The notes beneath the pieces were generated by a model. The model was given only the letters and a program-made list of their open reading frames with translations. It had not been told where the DNA came from and ran no database searches. Below are positions 3,276-44,548 of a stretch of 44,548 bases of DNA, piece after piece (positions within the stretch are counted from its first letter, which is position 1; the number at the start of each line of letters is the position of its first letter). The stretch comes from Pelomyxa schiedti (lineage: Eukaryota; Protista; Evosea): positions 1 to 44,548 of the forward strand of contig JAHLWZ010000383.1 of assembly GCA_020536535.1 (NCBI GenBank), read 5' to 3'. A program made the translations under genes and the position numbers.

Positions 3276-5357
3276 TTACAACCTCTGAGGCTCAGCCTTT
3301 GTCGGTTCTTCCGTTGTTATTGTTGCCTTTGTGGATGGTTGTGGGGGTGCCGACGGAGACGGTACAAGGAAGCTGAAGGAAGGAAACCAGTCAATCATCT
3401 GCTGCACAGTGGCTGTGGCTGCTGCTGATTCTTGCAAGAACGCGGTGATATCTGCTGCGCTGGTTGGAAATTCCTTCTGTAGAATAACAAGAGAATGTGC
3501 AACACAGCGGGCTAGGTTCTCTGTGTGTATTTGTGGATTTCATTAGATTATATTGAATTCTTTTATTGCGGTGGTGATGTGATTAGGATTTGTTTGTGGA
3601 TTAGGGATGCCTGATGTCATTTTATTCAGATCACTGGCCTGGGAAACGAAGTTCAAAAGCTCTAGTAACCATCTAAGTTTGGTAAGAAGAGACAAATGTG
3701 AAAGGACACAAACATTAACAGGGAAAAGTAAGAAACAGGAAGTTTTTGAAAATATTCGAGCAGTTCGTCAACAGGTGGCGGGGAGCCGTTGTTGGCTTTT
3801 TGCATTATTGCCACTAGTTGAGTGTTAAGTTCTGGTGTTGGGGTCAACAGTGATACAGGCAAGGATCTAAGTTCACAAGAAGTTAAGGGAACCATTCATT
3901 TATTTATTGAACTTCAAAGGTAACCTGAGGAATGTTCCAATGAGACTGGTTGCATCATGTGGTTCCAGGTCATCAAAAGATGTATAAAGTGCCATTCCGG
4001 ATGCGTCAATCAGTTTTCTCAGTGATTCAACACGTTTTACTCCACCAGAAATTCTGAAAAGACCTTCACAACGTACATCTTGAAGACATGTTATTAAAAC
4101 AACAAGGAATTGAAACAGACCCACTTGCACGAATGACTTTCCCACAGTCTACGAGGAAAGTTGGTACTCCTTGGATAGTGGGTGTCCTTTCAGACAACAG
4201 CATTGGGTCGACCTTAAATATTCTTGTTGCATCGGACACAACAGCGAGAGAAGCTGCACTGTGTAAGAAAGTGGTATTATTGGCTTACTCAGTACGGCCA
4301 CTGGGTTCACTTTTACGGAACTTTCCAAAAATCGCGAATGGGTTCTGTTGGTTGTCAATTAGTTGAGAGTCAACATAATAAAATGTACTTTGTTTTTCGG
4401 AGGGAGCTTGGTTCTGGAACTTAGACTAGTTGACTGAGAAAGGCCTCCACTTTTCGTTAAAGCTGTTGATACTGGTGGAGGTGGGGGAGGAGGAGGAGGA
4501 GAAGATAGAGAGGGGGTGAGAGGAGCTTGTGAGGGAAGAGCAGGTGACTGCTGGGACTGTGGAGGTGGTGCTGGTGGGCGACGAGCTGGAGGGCGTGAGA
4601 GGGTTGGTGAGGGAGGTGTGGGGAGGGCACGGGGAGTACTGTGGCGTGCAGTGGTGGGGGAGGTGCTGGATGTGCTAAGTGACAGGTTGCCCATGTGTGT
4701 GCTTGCCAGGGTGGGGGCAGTTGTGGGGGATACAGAGGCGCTATTTGTGGGCGAAGTAGAGTTTAAACATGGAACGAGTTTTGGAGATGAATTCGAGGCT
4801 GAGTGGAGTCTCGGGGATGGAGTGGAAGTTGGAGAAGTATGTGCGTTTATGTTTGGAGTTGAGGTGACAGGTTGAGTGTCTGTGAGGTTTGTGTCCGTGG
4901 AATTGAGGATCCCAGCTTGCATAAGCTCGGCAACGGTGGGCCTCTGACTCAACCTCACTGCCAAGTTGCGCTTGGCCATTTTCTTCTGTAGTGCTTTTTT
5001 TTCCTCTGAGTACTTGGACTCAAGTGGCGCTTTTTAAAGGATCAGTTTTAAGAAAAAGAGGACCACGAGTATGAAAGCTAACTCCTAAAGTTAGGGTGGT
5101 TTTTTTTTTTTAATTTTGGTTTTAAATAACACTCTACACACCAACGACCACAGGAGGCCCAGTCTTGACAGGCAATTCATCAGGTTTGGTTCTTGATCCC
5201 GAGAGCCATTTCGAAATTCCTCCTTTCTTCTTATCTTTGGGGATGTAAACAAAGGCCAAAAAAAAAAAAAAAAGCCACCTTTAGGCTCTGATGACGACGA
5301 CCTCAGACGGTTTGTCCTCGATGTCGACGGAGTCTGCGACGGTGACCCTTCGTCCAT
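3276..5357 (-). CDS. RhoGAP domain protein with RPEL (G-actin-binding) motif and proline-rich linker (multi-exon)
   Basis: Start MDEGSPSQ at 5357. Contains RPEL KRNLAVRLSQRPTVAELMQAGIL, poly-Pro, GVPTFLV, arginine finger EGLFRISGG, HDATSLIGTFLR and ENLARCVAHSL. Ends EPQRL* at 3276. Confidence 0.9.
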
Positions 5358-5444
5358 GAACCAGCGTGGGAAAAAAAAAGGAACCAAGGGACACTCCTTT
5401 CTTGCTTTTTGTGCTCTTTTCTTTTTTTTCGCGTTTGATCGGGT

Positions 5445-7408
5445 TTATGTACAGTTAGGTGAACCAGATTTCTCGGGCTTGGGTGTCTCTGCCTGACGCC
5501 AAGAGGCCGCCCTATGAATTGGGCTGTGAGTTTCGTTTCATGCAATGGGAAATACTTTGTTATGGTGGCTTCTATCCAATTAGGTATTTGTGCCTCGTCC
5601 TGTTGGCATTTGACAAGGAAAGTGAACATGATTTCTTCCCATTCAGAGAAAACACTTGACATCGATGCAGCATACTCGGCATAACTAATTGTGGAGTGAG
5701 GTGTTGCATGAGCACAACGGTGGGAAAGTACGGTTGTCTCTTAGGCAAATCATACAAGAATACTAAATTTATAACTCTTGGATAGACGTTAGACTATGTA
5801 GTTACAAGGGTAGGGTAGCTGACATACATGTTGGGACAACGCCGGCATGACTGTAACAAGGCAATTGCTTGCTGTTGTGTATTGGGATAACGATGGAGCG
5901 CCCAGCCAGAAAGCAAAAAATCCTTGCCAGTTATTGCGTAGTGTGGCACGAAGTCTTCTTTTTTCGTCGTAAGGTTTCAGGAGATGGAGAAGACCACAAC
6001 CATCCTCTGCACTTGGACTTTCAGCCTGTGAGCGCATCTTCTTTGCACACAAATACCTAAGTCCTCTCTAGGTTTTCCAGTAATTGAGAGACTGCTAGAT
6101 AGGTCTTGGTCGTACAGTTGCAGCAAGAGCTTTCAAGTACTTTCCACTTCCACATCCCTTGGGCGCAAAAATAATAACACGAAGTGGTCTACATGGACAA
6201 ATGACAACACGAAGACAAATGTGGGGTAAAAGCTCCTGTTGTGTTACGTTTGAGTGCGTTCGTAGAAAAGAAGTGTACTACACGACCTTCATTGATCTTT
6301 CACCTTTTAGTTCAAACAGTGTAACTTCATTCAAATCAAGTATTGTGGCCTTGAGGTTAGGATAGGTAGTTTGGAACTTTTGAAAACTGGTGCGAGTGAG
6401 ATAACAGTACATTTTTGGTTTTCACCTTGATTCTTCAGCGGCATTAGTTATTTTTGCCCTGCAAACCTTCAAAGCTTTAAAAGATGAATCAAAAAGAACG
6501 CGAACCTCTCCAGGAACGTTGAATTCGAATACAGTTTGAGGAATAGCACCCAATTTCTAGGTTTGGTGTGAAAAAAATTACGTTAGGAACTCAAATGGGA
6601 TGTGGTAACAACCATTAGTTTCATGCAAGTGTCAATATTCCCGGGGCACACATTCATGATCCAACCTTTATTAGCCCATATCACTCTGTTATCCCAGTTC
6701 TCAGCTTTGAAGTCGTCGGAGCAGGTGACAGGAATTAGGGAAAACTTCTTCGCAAGAAAATTGGTAACTTCTAGAAGATCCTGTCGTATAGGTCCCACAA
6801 GGGCAACTCTGTTATCTTTCATTTTTATTAGAGCAAGTGATATCTCTTAGTATAAATTTATTGCAGGGCTATAGTTTGACGATGTATCAAATACAAGCGA
6901 GACTTCTGAAAGAGTGGAACAGAAAGGCTGGAAAATTTTCAGGCATGAGCCGCACAGAATTGTTCAGAATTTCCTGTACACAATGGGTCAATCCGTGAAG
7001 CCTCATATACTCCTTCTTAGCCTCGTTGAGTCCCGAAGGCACCAAATCCGGGTGTGCCTCGTCGTGCTGTGCGAACGTTTTCCAAGCGGTAACAACAGGC
7101 GAAGGAGAAGTCGCAGTGGCAGTACCAGTCATAGATGTAGTAGTGGTAGTAGTGCTGCTAGTGTTAGTGCTAGTGCTAGTTACAGTTGTAGCTGCAGTGG
7201 CAGTAGCAGTCGCTGCAGTTGCGGAAGCAGTTGATGACGTGGTTGCTGCAGTTGCAGTGGCAGAATTAGAACTGCAGGTCAAAGATGGGTGTCCTTCTGC
7301 TTTCCGAGTCCGACCGACGTGCTTCATCGACACGCCAGAGTTTGTTGCTGTTTTCTTGGAACTGGTCCCTTTTCGCCCTCCCCTGTGGGTCGACTCATGT
7401 TGGAGCAT
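5445..7408 (-). CDS. Adenylate kinase 8-like protein (DPY-30/RIIa-type docking helix plus two degenerate adenylate kinase domains)
   Basis: EYMRLHGLTHCVQEILNNSVRLMPENFPAFL resembles the AK8 N-terminal docking helix. Domain 1: RVALVGPIRQD..FLAKKF..GWIMNVCPGN..KLGAIPQTVF. Domain 2: RVIIFAPKGCGSG..GWALHRYPNTQQQA. The 3' end is predicted via a GT-AG intron near 5513-5554. Confidence 0.65.
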
Positions 7409-7479: not shown

Positions 7480-8471
7480 ATGGCAGACACGGGCTTAGTG
7501 CTGGTGACTACGTCGTCGAGTGGCGGGGAGCCCCAGACTCTTAGTGAAAGATTCACGTTCGTCAATCAGCAGAAGCAGGCACATAGGGAACAGAGGCTTT
7601 TTGCGGCGAGGGCCAGGCGCCAGAACGCAGTTGCACGCGCTCGTCAACTTGTACTTTTAAATTACATTTTTTTAAAAATTCAATTGGAATTTGTTTGTCT
7701 CTCCGAAGTCTTTATGTTACTTTCTTGTTTTTTTCCTCCGTTTACACAGTCCCTTTTTGTTGTGTTACTACTGATTTTTCTTTACACTATAAAAACTGAG
7801 ATACATATCATAAACAGGCTTATGCACCGGTGTACGACAATGTGACTGTTGCCAATATTTCGCACAGAAGAACCCGAGGCGGCGGCACCAGAGAAATATG
7901 GACAGGCACCCCTCAACATTCCTCAGTCATGAGCAGGACATCACTCCATCCCAGTGGCCTGATGCTATCCCACAATGGCCGCGTTGCATCCCGTCCCCGT
8001 CGTTCTCGACGCCACCGTCAACCCGTTCTCACAGCCAACAACATTGGCGGCATGATTACCACTCCAAATGTACCTATGCCTCTGGCCGTGCCAATGTTTG
8101 TTGCCCCTCAACAAGTTCCATTTGTCATACAACAGGGTGGCCCCCCAGTGCAATACATTCAGCACCCACTGGTATCATCAACAGCTTCAGTTGCACCCAG
8201 ACACCCCAGGGGACGAGCAGGACCACCAATTAACAGTGGGACAAATGCAACTGCAACGGCAACGGCAACTGCAAATTCAAATGGAAAGGGAAAGGGAAGG
8301 GGAGGAAGAAAAGGTAGGGGGAGGGGAAAGGCCAAGGGCAAGGGAAATGGGAATGGGAAGCTTACTGCTGATTCACTGAACAATGACTTGGAGGGTTACA
8401 TGTCTAAGAACCCAGTTACAAAGCAGGAGAAGCTGGACAACGAGCTGGAGCAGTACCTCAATGGACAATGA
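7480..8471 (+). CDS. CHTOP/Friend-of-PRMT1-like protein (RGG-rich, C-terminal FoP duplication)
   Basis: N-terminal TLSERF motif, one intron at about 7651-7818, a GRGGRKGRGRG tract, and tandem C-terminal LTADSLNNDLEGYM / KLDNELEQYL motifs (UAP56-binding type). Stop TGA. Confidence 0.75.
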
Positions 8472-8645
8472 GGAAAAGAGTTCTGTTGTTACTTGTTGTG
8501 AAAAAGAAACTGTTTGAGTTGGGACACTTGTGTTTATTCCATTGTGGTACAATATGGATTTCTTGGCATCAAACAAAGAGGTGTTTTTGAGTGGAGATAG
8601 TGGAGATAATACGAAGGGCATTATTGAAACAAACAGGATAAATGT

Positions 8646-10484
8646 TTAGTCCTGAGGCTTGTACAAAATTGCACCAACACCACTTGTATCACCCAAAAAT
8701 TTTCTGCCTTCTGCGGTCTTGTGTAGTTTTAGTGTTCACACTATTATGGGACTAATGGGAAACACACCCAAGCGGAAACCAATGTAAGAGTACATCCATA
8801 TATTTGGTAATTCTGGGCTATCCATTCAGTAAAACGCATCTTGGATAGCACGTCATGGTACTCATCTTAACAAAAAAAGTGTTACTAACGTGGATAAGGT
8901 GAAAGGTGATGGTACACACAACATTCTTTTTCACTTGGAACATAAATGACCCTCCCAGTGCTTGGTGGATTAACACCTACTAATAAGTGCCACCAATCAC
9001 AATTTTGAGAAACGATCAGCTTATCTACAAGTCCACGTTCACACAATTGCATAGTGCCAGCAATGCCTTCAATGGCCAAACCGTTACCTGCTCTAAATTA
9101 GAATTGTTTGCTGTTTATATAAAGAAAAAGTACCAGCTTCTTTTTTTCTGAAGAATTCTTCCACCAGTTCTTGTTCTTGAAAAAGCTGCAGAAAACATGG
9201 ATTAGTAGATTGACGTGGTGACGAAACAAACCAAATGATTTGCTCTTGAAAATTTAACTGCTTGCCAAAAGCCACATTCTCCTCCCTGTGCCACCTGGAA
9301 AACTCTGCATAGTGACGCAAGTGAGGGTGGAATGAGGCCAGGTGTGCACAGATCCTGGTAGAATTCGGAAGTGCAACCAAGTGCAACTTCTGGTACTCGT
9401 ATCTAGTAATCATCAGTGAGTTATGTTTGAAAACTGAAGAAACCAAACCTCTTGCCTCACGGAAAAAGTTTCATTTGCTAACTGCAGGGCACTCAGAAGA
9501 AAGTTTTTCCGTCCTTGTATATGATCATCCAGAGAGTCTTGGAGCGAGTTGCCGAGATTACATGCAAGAGTTTTCACAGCCTTACGGCAGCTTCCACAAA
9601 TTGTGCTGTGAAGTGGGAAGAAACAAGGTTTTGAGCACTAGTAACATATTGGGATTGTTATTTACCTTACTTCAGCACCTGTATTACTAATGACAATGAT
9701 ACCACAGCTTGTTCTAACCAGTTCCATCTCCTCCAAAATGTTGGTGGCAAAGTGGTTGTCACATATGTACAAGCTAGCATTCAGTTGAACACGAGGCTTA
9801 GGGTATCACAATAAGACAACAGATATTGCAGAGATATAGACCCATACTTCAAAAGATAATATGAGCTTCTTTTCTCTTCCTTCAGTATCAATGGTGATAC
9901 CACAAAAAATAATGAGGCCATTGCTTGGAAGCATTGAGTACTTCTAGTGGAGGAAATGAGTCCACTACCACGGGTGAAAATTGGAAAAAGTATATGACTA
10001 AAACTATACCTTGAGTTCTTGTGCAGCCGCACTGAGCGAGAAAAGAGGTAGCTTCCGAGAAACACGAGTTCTAATGGACATTGCAGTGCCATACTCATCA
10101 GCTAAAAGTTTAGAGGTCTTTGCCAAAGAACCTGTTGCAGGTATATACAGCGAAATAGCAGTGGCGGAGTGTCTGCAACATACAATAAACAACGAATCAC
10201 ACCAAAAGGGGAAAAAGGAAAAGCCCAAGGTGTTTGGTCTTTTTTCTCACAGGCACACACATGCAGGCGTGCGTGAGCCTGACCAGCCTCGTGGTGTACA
10301 GCCAGTCGAGCACCGCGTCGTGCTGCGCCGCGAAGATGGCGGCCAGCCACGCACAAGCTATCTCCCGCAGCACCTCGCGCGGCGCCCAGCGCACAAACGA
10401 GCAGGCGCCCACGCGTGGGTGCGCCCCACAGCACAGCGCCACCACCCTGTCTCGGAATGCCCGCTGGCGCCCACCTGTATTCAT
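8646..10484 (-). CDS. Divergent eukaryotic release factor 1 (eRF1) paralog lacking GGQ and NIKS, with N-terminal extension
   Basis: Spliced product is collinear with eRF1: AISLYIP..KLLADEYGTAMSIRTRVSR, PSNGLIIFCG..EGREKKL..FEP, SLYICDNHF, GIIVISNTGA, RKNF, GGECGFWQAV, GLVDKLIV, EWIAQNYQIYGCTL, EGRKF..GVGAILY. Stop TAA at 8646-8648. Confidence 0.88.
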
Positions 10485-10562
10485 TCTGAGACCCGAAGCA
10501 ATATTGTGATCGAAACTTTACGCGATCCCACTCCCTTCTTTTTTCGACAAGAAGGGTGAACC

Positions 10563-13329
10563 TTGATGAAGCCGTCGGTGGACGCGTTTGCCGTGATGAT
10601 GGGAGCAGCAGCTCGCGGCGGAAGCACCAACTGCAACGGCACCAACAAGCACCGAGGAGGCGGCGGTGGCCGAGGTCGAGGGCGCGCCTCCCGCATTTTC
10701 CCGATCACGACGTCGTCCTCGGGTGTCAAGTTACCGCCGTCTCTTGGGGGTGGCGCCTATCTCGCGGCGACGCCTACTACTACCGCGGCAGCGCACGAGG
10801 ATGCCTACGCGCGGCGGGACCGCGGCGACGACGAAGTTTCTCTTCCACTGCGCCGGCCTCATCACCCCGATGAGGGTTGCGATTCACCCTTGCAAAACCC
10901 TAACGCAAATGCAACTGCAACGACGTCATCTGCCGCTACAACTGCAACTGCAGCTGCCTGTTCAAGCACAGACGCAGCAACTACAACTACCAGTGTGGCT
11001 GAAATGACCACTGAAACTACAACAACCACTGTGAGTGACAAACTTAATTGTGATACACACAAGGACTGTGACTTGGTGAAAACGTCGGAATTACAACCAG
11101 GCGATGGAATTGTGGGAGACCCTTCATCATCGAGCAAGACTTCTGCCGAATGTGGGACCAATTCTGTTTCCCCGAGCGATTCTTCTTCCCTGAAGATATC
11201 ACTGCCATCTGCCTCCCTCAGTCTTCCTATTGCTACTCCTACTTCTCCTGATTCTGCAGCCAACAGTTGTGTGGTTCCAGCTGCCAAAGATGCCTTCAGT
11301 GTACTTTTTGCCAATTCACGCAACGCCAGTGCCGTGGGCACAGGAAAGAGAAGGAAACTGTCGGGTTCCGGTGTGCCACGTACCGAAGTGTTCTCTCTCA
11401 CACTAGACGCCACCAAGTGTGAGTGGTCCTGGTCGTGGACTGCGAGTAAACCTGATACCCAACCAAGCCAAAGTCTGATTTTGCCCTCTGCATCTACCAC
11501 CTCTCCCCCACTTTTGCCAACGTCTCCGCTAAAAGGCTCGTCATGCAGTCTTCCTAGTACCTCTTCATCTGATCCTCCTAGCGCCTCTTCAATTCCACAC
11601 GGGGATTGGATTTATGTTCCATGCTGCCATCATAAAAACTCTGTCTGTGAGATTTCTACTGAGTGTCTGGAAAAGCGGCTAGATTCCTCATCTGTGAAAA
11701 CACTTGCCTCATTTGAGGAAGCCAGCAAGTCATTTACGACAGCGGCATCACTTATGCAAGAAAAAAAAAGTAGCTCCCAGATTTTATCTTGTACAAGTCA
11801 GTCTCTTAGTTCAACACAAACACCCCCTACTGGAACGCACCCCTACTGGACTCGCGCAAACGTTAATGGCCGATGGAGTGCTGTTTGTAACTATGTTGAT
11901 CCAGTCGACGGTATGAATGGCATATCCATTAAGAAACAAACTCAAACTCAAGATAAATGTTGTTGCAGGCTGTACTGTATCGGTGGCACTTGAAACGAAT
12001 CATACAGCTGCCAAGCCAATCAATTTAAATGATGATGCCTTGCGATGCAACATGAGCAGGCCAAACAGAAGACCCCTTAACTTGCCTCGATCTATTCTGA
12101 AGAGCCTTTTGCAGAAAAATGTTCGCCTTTGTAGACCAGATGCTGCTGTCAGGGCTGCTCTGGCGCTCATGAAGTATATGAGTGAAATAGCTGATCTCTC
12201 TTTAACCTTATTACAGATTAGATTTTGTTCATTTTATACGCCGCCTTTCCATCATCGTTGTTGAGGATGCCATTGCCCACCCACTCCTACCTTTTGTTGT
12301 CTGGCTTACACTGGCAGTATCCGCCCAGGGAGCTTGCTTTAATCTCACCAAGTGCCATGTTGAAACATGTCTCTGGATCGTTTCAGAACTGGCAACTATT
12401 AACATCAAGTATCTCCCCAGTAGAGCACCACCTTCTAAATTGTATTCAGGGACCCCTTTCCCGGCTACCACCAAGCACCCCTTACAACTTCTGAACTCCA
12501 GAGACTTCCGTGTCACCAGCAGAGCTTTGTCAAAGTGAGTACACTGTTCTCTGTCACATTTTTTTGCTTATCTCCCGAACAGTCGCTTTTTGTGCGGGCG
12601 GCGTTTGGTGGTATGAAGGGAGATGTGAAGATGTTGAAACTGTTTGGGAATCTCTGGACTAGACGCTTTCTTCAAGATATCCCTTCCCCTCTCTGGTGTG
12701 GAACTGAATTTTGTTGCTGGGAGAGCTTCATCTGCGGGATGTATTCACGGCATGCCACCAGAGCTATAGCTCTGGAAACTGTGGGACCACTATCAGAGTC
12801 AGGTACGATTCCACTTTTGATTCACAATTTAAATCTAGTGAACGGGCAGATATCCCTCTGTCCTGCGTTGACTTCCACTGCTGTTCCATAGACACTCTAT
12901 TATCCAATCAAGTGGTTATCGATTCCATCACCAACTTCGTAAAGGAGAATACAGGGTATGATCATCAACCACATAACAAAACAATATATTAATAGTAACA
13001 GCAATCTTACCAAACCCACCCAAACTGATTCAAACCTAAAAAGAGAAAATTCTGTACACCCTGAAGATATGTTGTTACTTATCAAGCGTGTAATGTGGCA
13101 CTTCCGCAGTAGCACCAATTTCAAGAAACCGGTTATTGAGATTCAGCAGAGCGACATTGAAGCTGCACACACAACAAGCTCGGCAATCAACACGCTCAGT
13201 GACCAGCGCCTAACCCCATTATGGGAATCACTCAAGGACCAGTTCGATGCGTTCTCGTACCAAACAATACAAAAAGTCCGCTACAACAACCCGGACACAA
13301 AATCTTGGTCACAAAGCACTGGCTTCTAA
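10563..13329 (+). CDS. Uncharacterised protein with MgsA/RarA C-terminal-like helical domain and long disordered N-terminus
   Basis: Spliced C-terminal part reads LKSLLQKNVRLCRPDAAVRAALALM..FIRRLSIIVVEDAIAHP..VWL..RAAFGGMKGDV..VDFHC. The first motifs resemble RarA SALHKSxRGSxPDAA / RRxxxxxxED. No Walker A motif seen. Confidence 0.6.
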
Positions 13330-17763: not shown

Positions 17764-18105
17764 CTTGAGTGGCATATACCGGCTTTGGGAAGATATGACA
17801 CCCCCCACTCAAAGCACAAACAGGAGCACACAAGAGACCACCCCCAGAGAGAGACCAGAGACCCACGAAATTCGGCCCATTTCANNNNNNNNNNNNNNNN
17901 NNNNNNNNNNNNNNNNNNNNNNNNNNNNNNNNNNNNNNNNNNNNNNNNNNNNNNNNNNNNNNNNNNNNNNNNNNNNNNNNNNNNCTTGAGTGGCATATAC
18001 CGGCTTTGGGAAGATATGACACCCCCCACTCAAAGCACAAACAGGAGCACACAAGAGACCACCCCCAGAGAGAGACCAGAGACCCACGAAATTCGGCCCA
18101 TTTCA
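17764..18105. other. Scaffold gap (100 N, 17885-17984) with identical 121-bp flanks; assembly artifact
   Basis: 17764-17884 equals 17985-18105. Confidence 0.9.
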
Positions 18106-18352
18106 CCCACAACTGAGAATGCGGTTCATAAAAATTTTTTCGTATGTGTAGATTCTTATCCCCCGATTTTTATTTCGCATCGGCTTACGGTTAAACGAAG
18201 GTGTGAAGAGCAACTGGAGTACGATGCACTGCACAATGGCCGTGTTGCCTTATCGACCTAGACTACACTACGACCCAAAGAATCTCCTCTATCTTGTAAC
18301 TCTTTCAGTTTAAAAGTACAGGGGGCTTGTAGTAGTGGGAGCACAACAACAA

Positions 18353-21300
18353 TCACTCCAAGCTTTGTACTTTTTTGAGCTTGGACGCGAGTGTGAGAGC
18401 CTTTGGTGAATCGGGGGACTCCTGTTCGATGCACGTAGTGTAGAACTGCATGAGAGCCTGCTTTTGTCTGACAACGTCCCTGTGTGCCTCGTTCTTGAAC
18501 ACATCACGTGTTACGGCAAGTGCTTCAATGTAGAACTGCTCTGCTTGATCCAAAAATCCAGCCCTGAGGTTGAGAACAGCCGCATCATTCAGAGTGAGTG
18601 CAACTGGTGGACAATTAGTGTAATGTACTGTAAAGTAATGTAATGGGATGTGTTCTGTTTTGTGTGGAATTGATTATATGGTTGGGAAATGCACACCATC
18701 GGGGTGGTCGTATCCTTGGGTTTTTTCTAGAATGCTGAGTGCTCGGGTATACAGTGGCATGATTTCGTCGTAGGGTGCGTTTTGCCTTTGCGCAATGTTG
18801 GCCAATAGGTTGAGTGTTTGAGCAACATCTAGGTAAAATCAATGGTTGATAAGGCACCAAGGAAACAATTGGACTTACTGCAGTGATTTTCTCCAAACAG
18901 ACCAGTTAAAATACCGAGACTTTCTTGGAGCATTTTCTGCGCGGATGCTGTATCTCCAAGATCAGCTTTGAGTTCTGCAAGATTGTTCATTGACTGAGCT
19001 GTATCTGGGTGATTTTTCCCGAATGCCTTTCGTAACTGAGAATAAAATAAACTCGGAGTTTCATAAATACTTGAAGTCGAATAGAAAGTGCCCGTTCATA
19101 AAGTGGTTCTGCTGAAGGGCGCTTGCCCTGCCGAGCAAAAAGAACAGCATAGTCATTCAAAGAGAGAGCCAAATCCTACAAGCTGTTAATGCCAAGAAGA
19201 ATGGAAATTATACCAACAGGGTGCGTTGGACCAAGTAGCTGCTCTCTTATTGATATACTTTGCTTATATAGTTCTTCTGCCTTGTCAAAAAATCCTTTTT
19301 CCATAAAGTTCCCAGCAAGGGTATTCAACACTCTGGCTACATCGGGATGAATTTCCCCAAATCTTGTATTGTTACTCGATATGTAGTGTTGTAATATCTT
19401 ACAATCGCTCATAGATATCAAACGCTCGTCCAAGAAGAATTTCTGAGGAACAGTAAAACAATGCTTGAACAAGATAGCAAACCTGCGTCATCATATCGAC
19501 TTTCATCTATTAAAAGGCTGGCAAAATTACTCAATGTCATAGCAACATCGGGGTGGTTTGGACTAGGAATGTTTATTACCTCAAAAAACACATTAGGCAA
19601 CAAACCCAAGAGCCGATTCCCTTATCCGCAGTGCTTTTCTGAAGTATTCTTCAGATAAAGGATTGTTATTAAGGTCTTGGTATAAAGCACCCAAGCTATT
19701 GTAGCTATCTGCTACATCAGGATGACTACCACCAAGTATCTAGTAAAGTTAGATCCAGAAATGAGTCTTCTCCTGAACCTTCTCCCTGATGGTTAATGCT
19801 CTTAAGTACAGTGGCTCAGCCTCTTGATATTTTCCCATTTTTCTATATACTACTCCCATACTGAAAGGGAAAAGGTTATTGTGTTACCCTGTTTGTACCC
19901 CTTCTCCTTACTCATTTAAAGTTGAAGCCACAGGGAGACTAGACTCTCCAGAAAGATTCTCACGTGTTTTTAAAGAATCTTGGTAGAAAGGGAGAGCAGA
20001 CTGATACTTGCCAGTTAGGCGGAGCAAGTACCCCATACAATCACTGAAAGTAAGTGAGTATTCCGAAAAAAAGCTAGGGTAGTACCAAGTTTCAGCAAAA
20101 ATATCCTTTTCTGGCAGGGTGCAGCCGATTTGAAAAGCGGCATCATAACTACTGCTCCCTAGTGAGTAATTACCTATATCCTGGAGTACAGTTACGCTTC
20201 AGAATATGAACATAACCAACCTCGAAGAATTTTCCAGCTTTTAGATATTTATTGCACAAGCTCTTTTTCTCCTCAGTTCGGGCAGATAGAGTTACATTTT
20301 TTATGAGTAGTTGATCAACGGGAACAACTTTTTCGCACTTCAGATGTTAATTAATTTGGGCCCAAATGCACTAAGAACGAGAATACCTGTCGCCAATAAA
20401 CATAAAGGAGGAACCGAGTTTGAGGACTACACAAGTCCAAAAATACATCAGGCAATGTGAGAAAGTTTGCTAGAGCATTAGTATCTCCACTCTTGAAATA
20501 TTGGTAGGACAGTTCTTGTGATTTTCTGTTGCCAGTGAAAAATAAGTCACGTTAAGTTGAGCGAACCTTGGTGAGTTCGGACAATTACTATAATAGTTGA
20601 GCAGAAGATGCCGGACTTCCTGGACTTTGCTTGGTGTATGCATATAACGCTTTTCAACTGCCACACGTATGTAGTCATGAGAAAAGGAAATTACACCAAA
20701 ATTGGAGAAGAACATGTCCTGTGGGTTCTCAATCCAAGGGGAGTATTCCTTGAAATTACCTTGATTGATACAAAGATACTACTCCATACAACGCGAGAAA
20801 GGTGACAAATATCTAAAATTTCCTGTTCATACAGCCCCTTCTCTGAAAGAAAAATCGATGACAAAGTTTTTTCAAGGGCAGGCCTATGTTTATATCACCT
20901 CTACTCTTGGATATTAAAGATTTACTTATTTTCCCCCAGATCCTCTTCAAGACGAGTAAAAACGTGTTGAATCAGGTCAGGGACTGTGTCACTGGATAAA
21001 TATAGCTTAATCCTTGTAGTAACTTGCTCAAATACCTTAATACTGAGTCAAATTAAGAAAATAAGATTCCTTGAGTTATACTCCAAAGAAATGAAGTTCC
21101 TCCAAAATAGTACGTAAATAGAGAGGTAATTTGCACGGTTCCGAATCTTGAAGTAGGGCGAGCTGAGAATCAGCAAGGGTTTTACCATAGTGACCCAAAA
21201 GTCTTTTTGTGAAATTGTAATTTCGGATTACAAGATGAAATACACACGTACTCGCGAGAGAGGACGGCAATATCGGTTCTAGAGAGGGGTGGCACTGGTA

Positions 21301-27300: not shown

Positions 27301-27900
27301 ATCGGCAGTAAGCATCTCCAATGCGAGCGGTGATGTATTCTCCGTCGGGGACCAAATTCTCGTTCGGGTTGTTTCCGGTGGCTGCCACGGCGTGAGTGAT
27401 GTTTGGGTACTAGAACCAGTGAGACCAAAACACCACTCCAAATCAAAGAAAACCGGTACACCCCCGGCAAGTTCAGCAACAGCAACAGCAACTGCATCAA
27501 CCACTACCCCAGCAACACCACAACCNNNNNNNNNNNNNNNNNNNNNNNNNNNNNNNNNNNNNNNNNNNNNNNNNNNNNNNNNNNNNNNNNNNNNNNNNNN
27601 NNNNNNNNNNNNNNNNNNNNNNNNNGGGTACTAGAACCAGTGAGACCAAAACACCACTCCAAATCAAAGAAAACCGGTACACCCCCGGCAAGTTCAGCAA
27701 CAGCAACAGCAACTGCATCAACCACTACCCCAGCAACACCACAACCCCCTGCAGAATCCATTGTACCAGCCTCAGCTTCAACACCAACAGTGGAATCAAT
27801 TTCCACAAAACCGGCTGTAAATGTCATCAGCCCAACGACAACAAATGCGACAGAGGTTCATACTCACGACTCAACTAGCACCACTGAAAAGAAGGACTAA
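24370..27900 (+). CDS. RNB-domain 3'-5' exoribonuclease (RNase II/R family), bacterial-type core with low-complexity termini
   Basis: Spliced motifs DLTGLAFITMDNEDSRDLDQAM, ALADASYY..TSYYLPG..PMLPKELSEGLISLNP, HYGVGAQCYARFSSPMRE, plus a C-terminal S1-like region. The gene spans the gap at 27526-27625. Start is 24370 or 24440. Confidence 0.88.
27405..27746. other. Scaffold gap (100 N, 27526-27625) with identical 121-bp flanks; assembly artifact
   Basis: 27405-27525 equals 27626-27746. Confidence 0.9.
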
Positions 27901-27963
27901 TTTGAAAATAATTCAATAGATGTTGTCAGGGGTTTTTTTTTCTCTTTCTCTTGGAAGTTCCAA

Positions 27964-29029
27964 CTAGGAAAAGGATAGTTCCGCAACTAAAGGACGGTGG
28001 TCACTGCAAGTGCTATCGGGAATCCAGGTATTTAGCACTTTGACAGCAAGCTGGGAATCCTTGTTAATAAAGATGTAGTCTATCTTTTCAGTCGGTGTAT
28101 CCTGTGGAAAGTGTGAGAGCCGCTCTTTTTGAGGGTTTTTTCATTTTGTTGTACTTACAGAAGGGAATGTGTATCCAGAACCTGTCCCAGCCAGGTCCCA
28201 AACCTCATAGTAGTCCTCCTTCATGTCCAACACGGGTTGGTCTTCTGGAGTTGCATTGAAGTCTCCAGTGACAATGACTTATAATTGGAATAAGGTTTCA
28301 AGTAAGCACCGAGTGGATAAGGAAAGAGAATACCTGTATCATTTGGATATTTTACGCGGAGTGTACTGTCAATAAAGGTTTTTAACTCGGCTATTTCATC
28401 TACGCGACAGTCCTCATCCAAATCCAAGTGAGTGTTGATAAAGAGCAATCCAATTTTGCCACCCAATTCCTGAGGCAGTAATCTTATTCCAAAGCAAGCT
28501 CTAGCCTCATTGGAGTATGACTTGTAGTGATACTCCTGGTAGAATTCCACAGTGAAGTCAGACAATCCTCCAATTCCGTACCTGCACCCGCAACATAAGT
28601 CAAATCTCAGGAATTCTCTCCCGAATCCCCAACAGTGAAAGAGAAGTACTCTCCACCCTGGTAAGGTATTGTCTCTGTATACACGTCATACATCCCAGTC
28701 AGCTCAGAAAATTCCGCGGGTTGATCAACACCCCCTGACCTAGTTGTCATGTTGTCCAATTCCTGCATTCCAACAAGCTGTGCACCAGCATCCAATATTA
28801 CTGCAATATGTAAAATAGGAAATAAAGTAAGCAAGTCAAGTTTTTCATTTTGGGAGCTAGAAGAAGAAAAACCATTAGCTTGGTCAGGGATATTTAAGGA
28901 CCCCTTGATATTGTGACCAGACTTCACATTGTATGTCATTACAACAAGTGATGATGCACTCCTTGTCATCAACAACATCCCATAAGCGAGAAACACCAGT
29001 CCAGAAACCACAACGTGCCGTGTCCTCAT
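27964..29029 (-). CDS. Secreted endonuclease/exonuclease/phosphatase (EEP) family metal-dependent hydrolase
   Basis: Signal-peptide-like MRTRHVVVSGLVFLAYGMLLM, then VMTYNV, LVGMQELD, NTHLD, VTGDFNATP, GYTFPS, KIDYIF and SDHRPLVAEL. Four GT-AG introns. Stop TAG at 27964-27966. Confidence 0.92.
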
Positions 29030-43924: not shown

Positions 43925-44548
43925 GGGTACTAGAACCAGTGAGACCAAAACACCACTCCAAATCAAAGAAAACCGGTACACCCCCGGCAAGTTCAGCAAC
44001 AGCAACAGCAACTGCATCAACCACTACCCCAGCAACACCACAACCTCCTGCAGAATCCATTGTACCAGCCTCAGCTTCAACACCAACAGTGGAATCAATT
44101 TCCACAAAACCGGCTGTAAATGTCATTAGCCCAACGACAACAAATGCGACAGAGGTTCATACTCACGACTCAACTAGCACCACTGAAAAGAAGGACTAAT
44201 TTGAAAATAATTCAATAGAAGTCTGTCAGGGTTTTTTTTTTTCTCTTGGAAGTTCCAACTAGGAAAAGGATAGTTCCGCAACTAAAGGACGGTGGTCACT
44301 GCAAGTGCTATCAGGAATCCAGGTATTTAGCACTTTGACAGCAAGCTGGGAATCCTTGTTAATAAAGATGTAGTCTATCTTTTCAGTCGGTGTATCCTGT
44401 GGAAAGTGTGAGACTCTTTTTGAGGGTTTTTTTCATTTTGTTGTACTTACAGAAGGGAATGTGTATCCAGAACCTGTCCCAGCCAGGTCCCAAACCTCAT
44501 AGTAGTCCTCCTTCATGTCCAACACGGGTTGGTCTTCTGGAGTTGCAT
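43925..44548. repeat. Near-identical second copy of 27626-28256 (RNB 3' end plus EEP 3' end); probable alternative haplotype joined across a 100-N gap
   Basis: It starts at the same base as the post-gap contig at 27626. Differences are three synonymous SNPs plus small indels or substitutions in the intergenic spacer and intron. Confidence 0.9.

Follow-up and report, generated by a model that had tools for sequence, protein, structure and literature searches.

The GGQ motif has been called universal in a/eRF1 by a published survey, and the divergent eRF1 paralogues of ciliates retain it (PMC2613156). Inactive members of the aeRF1 superfamily are already known, namely Pelota, baeRF1 and Balon (PMC6514570, PMC10901736), of which Balon is an aeRF1 homologue that lacks both NIKS and GGQ and hibernates ribosomes (PMC10901736). 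A keyword search of the literature, which was not exhaustive, returned no description of a GGQ-less eukaryotic eRF1 paralogue, and the sequence searches given below turned up no second example. Here we describe such a gene from Pelomyxa schiedti, in a window comprising the 44,548 nucleotides of contig JAHLWZ010000383.1 (GenBank assembly GCA_020536535.1).

The product of this gene shares with eRF1 (Sup45/ETF1) the N-M-C order and fold of its domains, 29-31% sequence identity, the YxCxxxF motif, E55, R65 and R68, and eight intron positions. It differs from eRF1 in having a catalytic loop that is seven residues shorter and acidic, SIRT in place of NIKS and SAT in place of GTS, in the loss of most of the eRF3 interface and the acidic tail, and in an additional N-terminal element that we term the HPRxG box. 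Like Pelota/Dom34 it is eukaryotic, belongs to the aeRF1 superfamily and lacks GGQ, but Pelota has an Sm-like N domain without YxCxxxF, and the protein is 12-14% identical to Pelota structures. In Balon and inactive baeRF1 the aeRF1 fold has three domains but neither NIKS nor GGQ, and they offer a precedent for the repurposing of a dead release factor; they are, however, ancient and conserved members of a bacterial clade marked by an HP motif and a bL27 trap, whereas the Pelomyxa copy is eukaryote-derived, fast-evolving, confined to a single lineage, fused to a box and only 10-17% identical to them. Ciliate eRF1-2 and the eRF1s of giant viruses are likewise extra or divergent copies with altered NIKS and GTS, and the Mimivirus copies also lack F406 and the acidic tail (PMC2613156, PMC6582330), but none has been described with an N-terminal box, and the Pelomyxa gene has host intron positions. 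At most the protein would work like a dead aeRF1-type factor, and not as a functional eRF1, Pelota or Balon. Our tentative preference, which we hold at somewhat less than an even chance, is that it is a lineage-restricted eRF1 duplicate turned non-catalytic adaptor, whose eRF1 body would bind a target or act as bait while its box would recruit a common partner.

Gene structure and transcript

The gene lies on the minus strand at 8646-10484, with the ATG at 10484 and the TAA stop at 8648-8646 both placed exactly. The coding span is divided into ten exons by nine introns, where an earlier note on this DNA had counted about eight exons, and its open frame of 443 codons encodes a product identical to the public protein KAH3763451.1 (P0001), annotated as P. 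schiedti eRF1. A contig of 1280 nt from run X4, which starts at 10506, skips eight of the nine introns, all of them GT-AG on the strand of the gene, and reads straight through exon 5 as modelled, whereas the same eight stretches are unskipped in three other runs. Run X4 carries no RNA label on its record. All four runs belong to a single study of one sample, from which the assembly was probably made, and so count together as one line of evidence. The gene is thus expressed and spliced, and the exons for which the earlier note had sought confirmation in a transcript are borne out at eight of their nine junctions. Intron 9 (8718-8767) falls beyond the end of the contig and is inferred; its position is the same as in both canonical Pelomyxa genes, and KAH3763451.1 agrees with it. 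Two DNA runs cross the locus in one unbroken piece, which rules out an assembly or sequencing artefact.

The contig of the GGQ-less gene and that of its plus-strand neighbour, which starts at 10560, are arranged head to head, with about 53 bases between them in which a shared promoter could lie; the neighbouring open reading frame (10563-11993) has no Pfam match. On the other side a convergent plus-strand neighbour (7830-8471) carries at its end a CHTOP-like domain of the Friend-of-PRMT1 family (PF13865, E 2.6e-11). Elsewhere in the window a 633-base segment is found at both 27626-28256 and 43925-44548 with 97.6% identity, and stretches of 121 bases are duplicated across 100-N gaps (at 17885, 27526 and 43825). 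These repeats around gaps are likely to be scaffolding artefacts and lie away from the GGQ-less gene.

Descent from eRF1 and selection

Pfam recognises the N and C domains of KAH3763451.1 (eRF1_1, E 2.5e-10; eRF1_3, E 4.4e-9) and the M domain only at E 0.06 (eRF1_2), while a profile of 161 a/eRF1s matches the protein at E 7e-60. In Pfam, PDB sequence and profile searches the similarity to eRF1 spans residues 55-438. All three domains are eRF1-like in the AlphaFold model (mean pLDDT 82.5), which itself rests on an eRF1 alignment and is not independent of it. Among the structural matches of the model eRF1 comes first (E 3e-37), followed by Balon (2.5e-17) and Pelota (4e-12). The modelled N domain superposes on the eRF1 N domain 2llx with a TM score of 0.85 and an rmsd of 1.4 A. 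The earlier reading of three eRF1 domains in order with no frameshift is upheld by these matches and by the intact frame, as is its description of a true eRF1 N domain with YICDNHF and PxNGL rather than that of Pelota.

Eight of the nine introns, intron 1 included, agree in position and phase with those of C1215, the canonical eRF1 of the genome with GGQ and NIKS. This sharing shows that the copy of an intron-rich eRF1 gene was made by duplication at the DNA level, and that the box entered upstream, captured inside exon 1. The gene models of C1215 and of a second GGQ-intact eRF1, C424, were drawn in this analysis without RNA support. In a tree from which the other long branches had been removed the GGQ-less gene groups with C1215 and C424 (SH-aLRT 90, unstarred), a phylogeny with the canonical eRF1 being among the checks proposed in the earlier note; a tree of 33 rows made by a quick search was swamped by long branches. 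Pelomyxa is the sole amoebozoan in the tree and the duplication is therefore undated. On the combined strength of sequence and model we regard the gene as an eRF1 derivative and not a Pelota, the genome having a separate and normal Pelota (C804). Other assignments were also discarded. Membership of Balon or baeRF1 is ruled out by the introns and the tree, and no baeRF Pfam family matches KAH3763451.1; a viral origin is ruled out by the shared host introns and the lack of any viral relative among the sequences found; and the gene is neither the sole eRF1 nor a variant-code eRF1, as C1215 (NIKS) and C424 (CIKS) both have an intact GGQ.

Besides the GGQ-less gene and Pelota, the genome has four eRF1-derived genes (C1215, C424, C267 and C87). 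C424 (about 17970-19600, plus strand) is 67% identical to C1215 and has only four introns. C267 (about 5140-6900, minus strand) is an eRF1 copy with an intact HGRGGQSA loop and a degenerate N domain that lacks GTS and NIKS and keeps YFCDAKF; it mirrors the GGQ-less gene and is a candidate for a release factor that would act independently of the codon. C87 (about 18440-19060, minus strand) encodes an eRF1 N domain on its own, in which the motifs have been rewritten (HCIKSR, YKHDDHF); its introns occupy the same two N-domain positions as in the GGQ-less gene. No orthologue of the GGQ-less gene was found in two length-limited word searches, the first of which scored 8000 candidates, in an exon-1 search of 1.84 billion representatives, or in searches of metagenome contigs and the Atlas; such searches have little power when a gene evolves fast and has many introns.

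Identity to C1215 at the first, second and third codon positions is 0.42, 0.60 and 0.34, respectively, and 17 of 49 four-fold sites are identical; synonymous divergence is near saturation. Invariant sites are kept more often than variable ones (77/207 against 15/95, p 1.5e-4). When neutral decay was simulated to the same identity a mean of 12.5 stops accumulated, and none of 300 runs remained stop-free. Measured by this divergence, the gene shows purifying selection over its history, if not necessarily today. A decayed pseudogene, the outcome that the earlier note had named as fatal to its reading, is ruled out by the intact frame, the spliced contig and the non-neutral divergence.

Selection of this kind leaves room for a fast-drifting duplicate that is kept only because of its fold or because it serves some purpose outside translation, is possibly heading for loss, and acquired its box by chance from an abundant family. 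We consider this somewhat unlikely. The branch leading to the gene is 4.5 changes per column long, against 0.16 for canonical eRF1, none of the known functional motifs has escaped erosion, although 52 of the 67 invariant hydrophobic sites still hold a residue of that class, other degenerate eRF1 copies exist in the genome, no orthologue was found, and two of the three differences seen in another run are non-synonymous (too few for a test); these points speak for drift. It accounts less well for the intact frame and splice sites, the spliced transcript, the conservation of the second codon position despite near-saturated synonymous divergence, and the selective retention of basic residues in the N domain.

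Catalytic loop, eRF3 interface and N domain

Exon 5 (9449-9605) encodes M domain and contains, at 9559-9500, the loop NLGNSLQDSLDDHIQGRKNF, which is seven residues shorter than the canonical loop, has a net charge of -1 against +6, and lacks GGQ, at the position and within the single exon that the earlier note had given for it. No minus-strand frame of 8400-10600 encodes GGQ, the sole occurrence in that interval being antisense at about 10338; this, and the passage of the spliced contig straight through exon 5, eliminates the alternative exon restoring GGQ that would have undone the earlier claim. The placement of the gap varies between aligners: the profile deletes GGQ, phmmer sets Q227 (in S-L-Q) on the catalytic glutamine, and MAFFT sets N224 there, but Gly-Gly-Gln is present in no alignment of KAH3763451.1. 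The M domain begins in exon 4 and is completed by exon 6 (9232-9402). Of its 14 invariant Lys/Arg positions 11 are lost and three are still basic; R189 and R192 are replaced by Asp and R203 by Leu (human numbering, via P0088 with a constant offset). Peptidyl-tRNA hydrolysis has almost certainly been lost, and the description of the protein as a catalytically dead eRF1 holds on sequence grounds. A factor that still hydrolyses peptidyl-tRNA or cuts tRNA, with Q227 as its catalytic glutamine in the manner of the variant motifs of Vms1/VLRF1, is very improbable. One alignment does place Q227 on Q185, but that register finds no support in the two others, active variants carry a tiny residue before the glutamine (GxuQ; PMC6514570) where this protein has Leu, the arm is seven residues shorter, and the arginines that follow have become Asp or His.

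The C domain begins in exon 7 (9134-9185) and continues through exon 8 (8920-9087), which includes a mini-domain shortened by ten residues and is followed by the sole intron absent from canonical eRF1, exon 9 (8768-8865) and exon 10 (8646-8717), where GAILYK stands for GAILRY and the TAA closes the frame without the acidic tail. Eighteen of its 38 invariant residues are kept. The eRF3-binding residues of eRF1 are F291, I294, Y301, Q397, Q401 and F406 (PMC6582330), and only F291 is kept: I294 is replaced by Lys in exon 7 and Y301 by Ala in exon 8, and Q397, Q401 and F406 are all replaced in exon 10. With five of these six positions changed, and with the acidic tail, NIKS, GTS and most of the M-domain Lys/Arg gone, competition for eRF3 is unlikely, as far as can be read from the residues themselves. 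This bears directly on the role put forward in the earlier note, a dominant-negative pseudo-release factor that would titrate eRF3, Hbs1 or ABCE1 and so increase readthrough or modulate NMD. Its three eRF1-folded domains, the partly retained C domain and the contact that ABCE1 makes with the C domain of eRF1 (PMC6813808) speak for such a factor; with the interface reduced to one residue, R192 and R203 changed to Asp and Leu, the tail deleted, the mini-domain shortened and N61, K63, T32 and V71 replaced, we consider it distinctly improbable, and the eRF3-competing, dominant-negative part of the note's model is not sustained.

The N domain is encoded by exon 2 (10010-10172), exon 3 (9848-9943, with PxNGL) and the first part of exon 4 (9666-9796). 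In exon 2 the decoding motifs have been rewritten, GTS as SAT (10168-10160) and TASNIKS as TAMSIRT (10087-10067), by which T32 becomes Ala, N61 Ser and K63 Arg, and V71 is replaced by Pro. In eRF1, N61 and K63 read U1 and T32 reads position 3; E55, Y125 and C127 read position 2, and R65 and R68 contact rRNA (PMC4605324). The protein keeps E55 (its own E101), R65 and R68 in exon 2, and Y125, C127 and F131 in exon 4, where YxCxxxF is present as YICDNHF (9769-9749). Against an invariant set drawn mostly from animal eRF1s, together with the two Pelomyxa copies, 37 of 79 residues are kept in the N domain and 18 of 76 in the M domain (p 0.004), and the Lys/Arg class is kept at six of seven invariant sites in N and at three of 19 in M and C together (p 0.002). 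The N domain, including its rRNA-contacting arginines, is thus the best-kept part of the protein as compared residue by residue, and this could reflect folding constraint alone.

Retention of the rRNA-contacting arginines, and the ranking of Balon and Pelota after eRF1 among the fold matches, could also be read as the marks of an A-site plug, which would occupy the A site without peptide release in ribosome hibernation or rescue, as Balon does without NIKS and GGQ, the box being incidental. The M-domain arm has, however, lost its basic residues and become acidic, the GTPase interface for delivery is eroded, the genome already has a normal Pelota, and descent from a eukaryotic eRF1 makes the HP motif of Balon unexpected; a plug of this kind seems to us quite unlikely.

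The HPRxG box and a possible adaptor role

Exon 1 (10261-10484, residues 1-74) encodes the HPRxG box and then a helix that continues into helix 1 of eRF1. The earlier reading of the gene as an eRF1 stands for the body; exon 1, by contrast, is largely not eRF1, and the motif that has expanded in this lineage, at residues of about 10-47 (10344-10457), had been left out of it, although nothing else in the gene points so clearly to a new role. The box consists of a helix, HPRxG in a loop with a following Ser (xxS), a short helix and a further helix. It was matched by a five-sequence profile built without this gene (E 2e-11, a score biased upward because the seeds were first found using the gene) and by a second profile that likewise excluded it (E 3.7e-14). 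There are 1301 first-look candidates in the genome, and all 150 that were scored passed; by these matches the box is common to hundreds of Pelomyxa genes. Most members are intronless frames of 400-600 aa, and the box is placed elsewhere at the C-terminus of an ankyrin protein and upstream of Vint or kinesin-like domains, an attachment to unrelated bodies that is as expected of a portable adaptor module.

Two members can be described further. An ankyrin-repeat protein (L075:2-1456) carries the box at its end, an architecture like that of ASB or poxvirus ANK/F-box adaptors. In a predicted gene model at L073:1310-2700 the box, apparently split by an intron, precedes a kinesin-like motor (PF00225, E 9e-7) in which the P-loop is intact and the switch motifs are altered (no SSRSH, and DLPG for DLAG); this is possibly a second case of the box joined to a dead housekeeping domain.

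The family resembles F-box and SOCS-box substrate adaptors in that a short helical box is carried on varied bodies, among them ankyrin repeats with a C-terminal box, and F-box-fused VLRF1 has been described in Naegleria and ciliates (PMC6514570). It differs in that the likeness to the F-box is confined to helix 1, and membership was not established by profile, Pfam or structure comparisons. Against the genome's own F-box profiles the box aligned only over helix 1, with probabilities of 1% and 22%; the latter comparison, with F-box helix 1 (LPxEvLxxI), covered 17 columns and scored 18.8 against a shuffled maximum of 11.6. The GGQ-less gene matched the F-box profile of the genome only at E 0.9-1.3, scans of 28 box members gave no Pfam F-box or SOCS match, and searches of the box against Pfam, PDB and structural families gave no match. 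We therefore do not class the box as an F-box, and a SOCS-box identity is without a profile match. Of 405 candidates in the genome at least 150 are canonical F-box-like matches, whereas no SOCS box exceeds the cut-off.

According to the adaptor reading, the eRF1 body would, after the duplication and capture of the box, have become a binding or bait module, most likely through its N domain, which could either dock on the decoding region of the 40S subunit, where it would not read stop codons in the normal way, or lure proteins that recognise eRF1. The box might recruit a partner common to its family, possibly a cullin-type ubiquitin ligase, and the adaptor would act independently of eRF3 and release no peptides. 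The shared introns, the grouping in the tree, selection, retention of the N domain and the presence of the box on unrelated bodies are points in its favour; against it, none of the comparisons made (Pfam, profile, structure and the genome-wide SOCS search) tied the box to a ligase, and with no orthologue there is no conserved surface that could be read from relatives. In a more specific form of this reading the dead eRF1 would be the subunit that directs a ubiquitin ligase to its targets: the N domain would enter the 40S decoding centre with a rewritten codon preference and without eRF3, and a cullin-type ligase would be carried by the box to these ribosomes or to intruder proteins that bind eRF1. 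We regard this form as rather unlikely.

The reach of the finding is limited: it concerns one gene in one species, no orthologue was found, and degenerate duplicates abound in the genome. Pelota, Balon and baeRF1, the inactive relatives that have been described to date, are ancient clades; here the inactive member is an expressed eukaryotic eRF1 derivative whose divergence bears the mark of selection. It has shed catalysis, and probably eRF3 binding too, while retaining much of the decoding domain, and so offers a natural experiment on the uses of the eRF1 scaffold beyond termination. Since it joins an orphan box to a known fold, the protein is also a useful probe for what the box family binds. 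If the ligase-targeting form were true, eukaryotic translation control would gain a new arm, and a motif carried by hundreds of Pelomyxa genes would be given a function.
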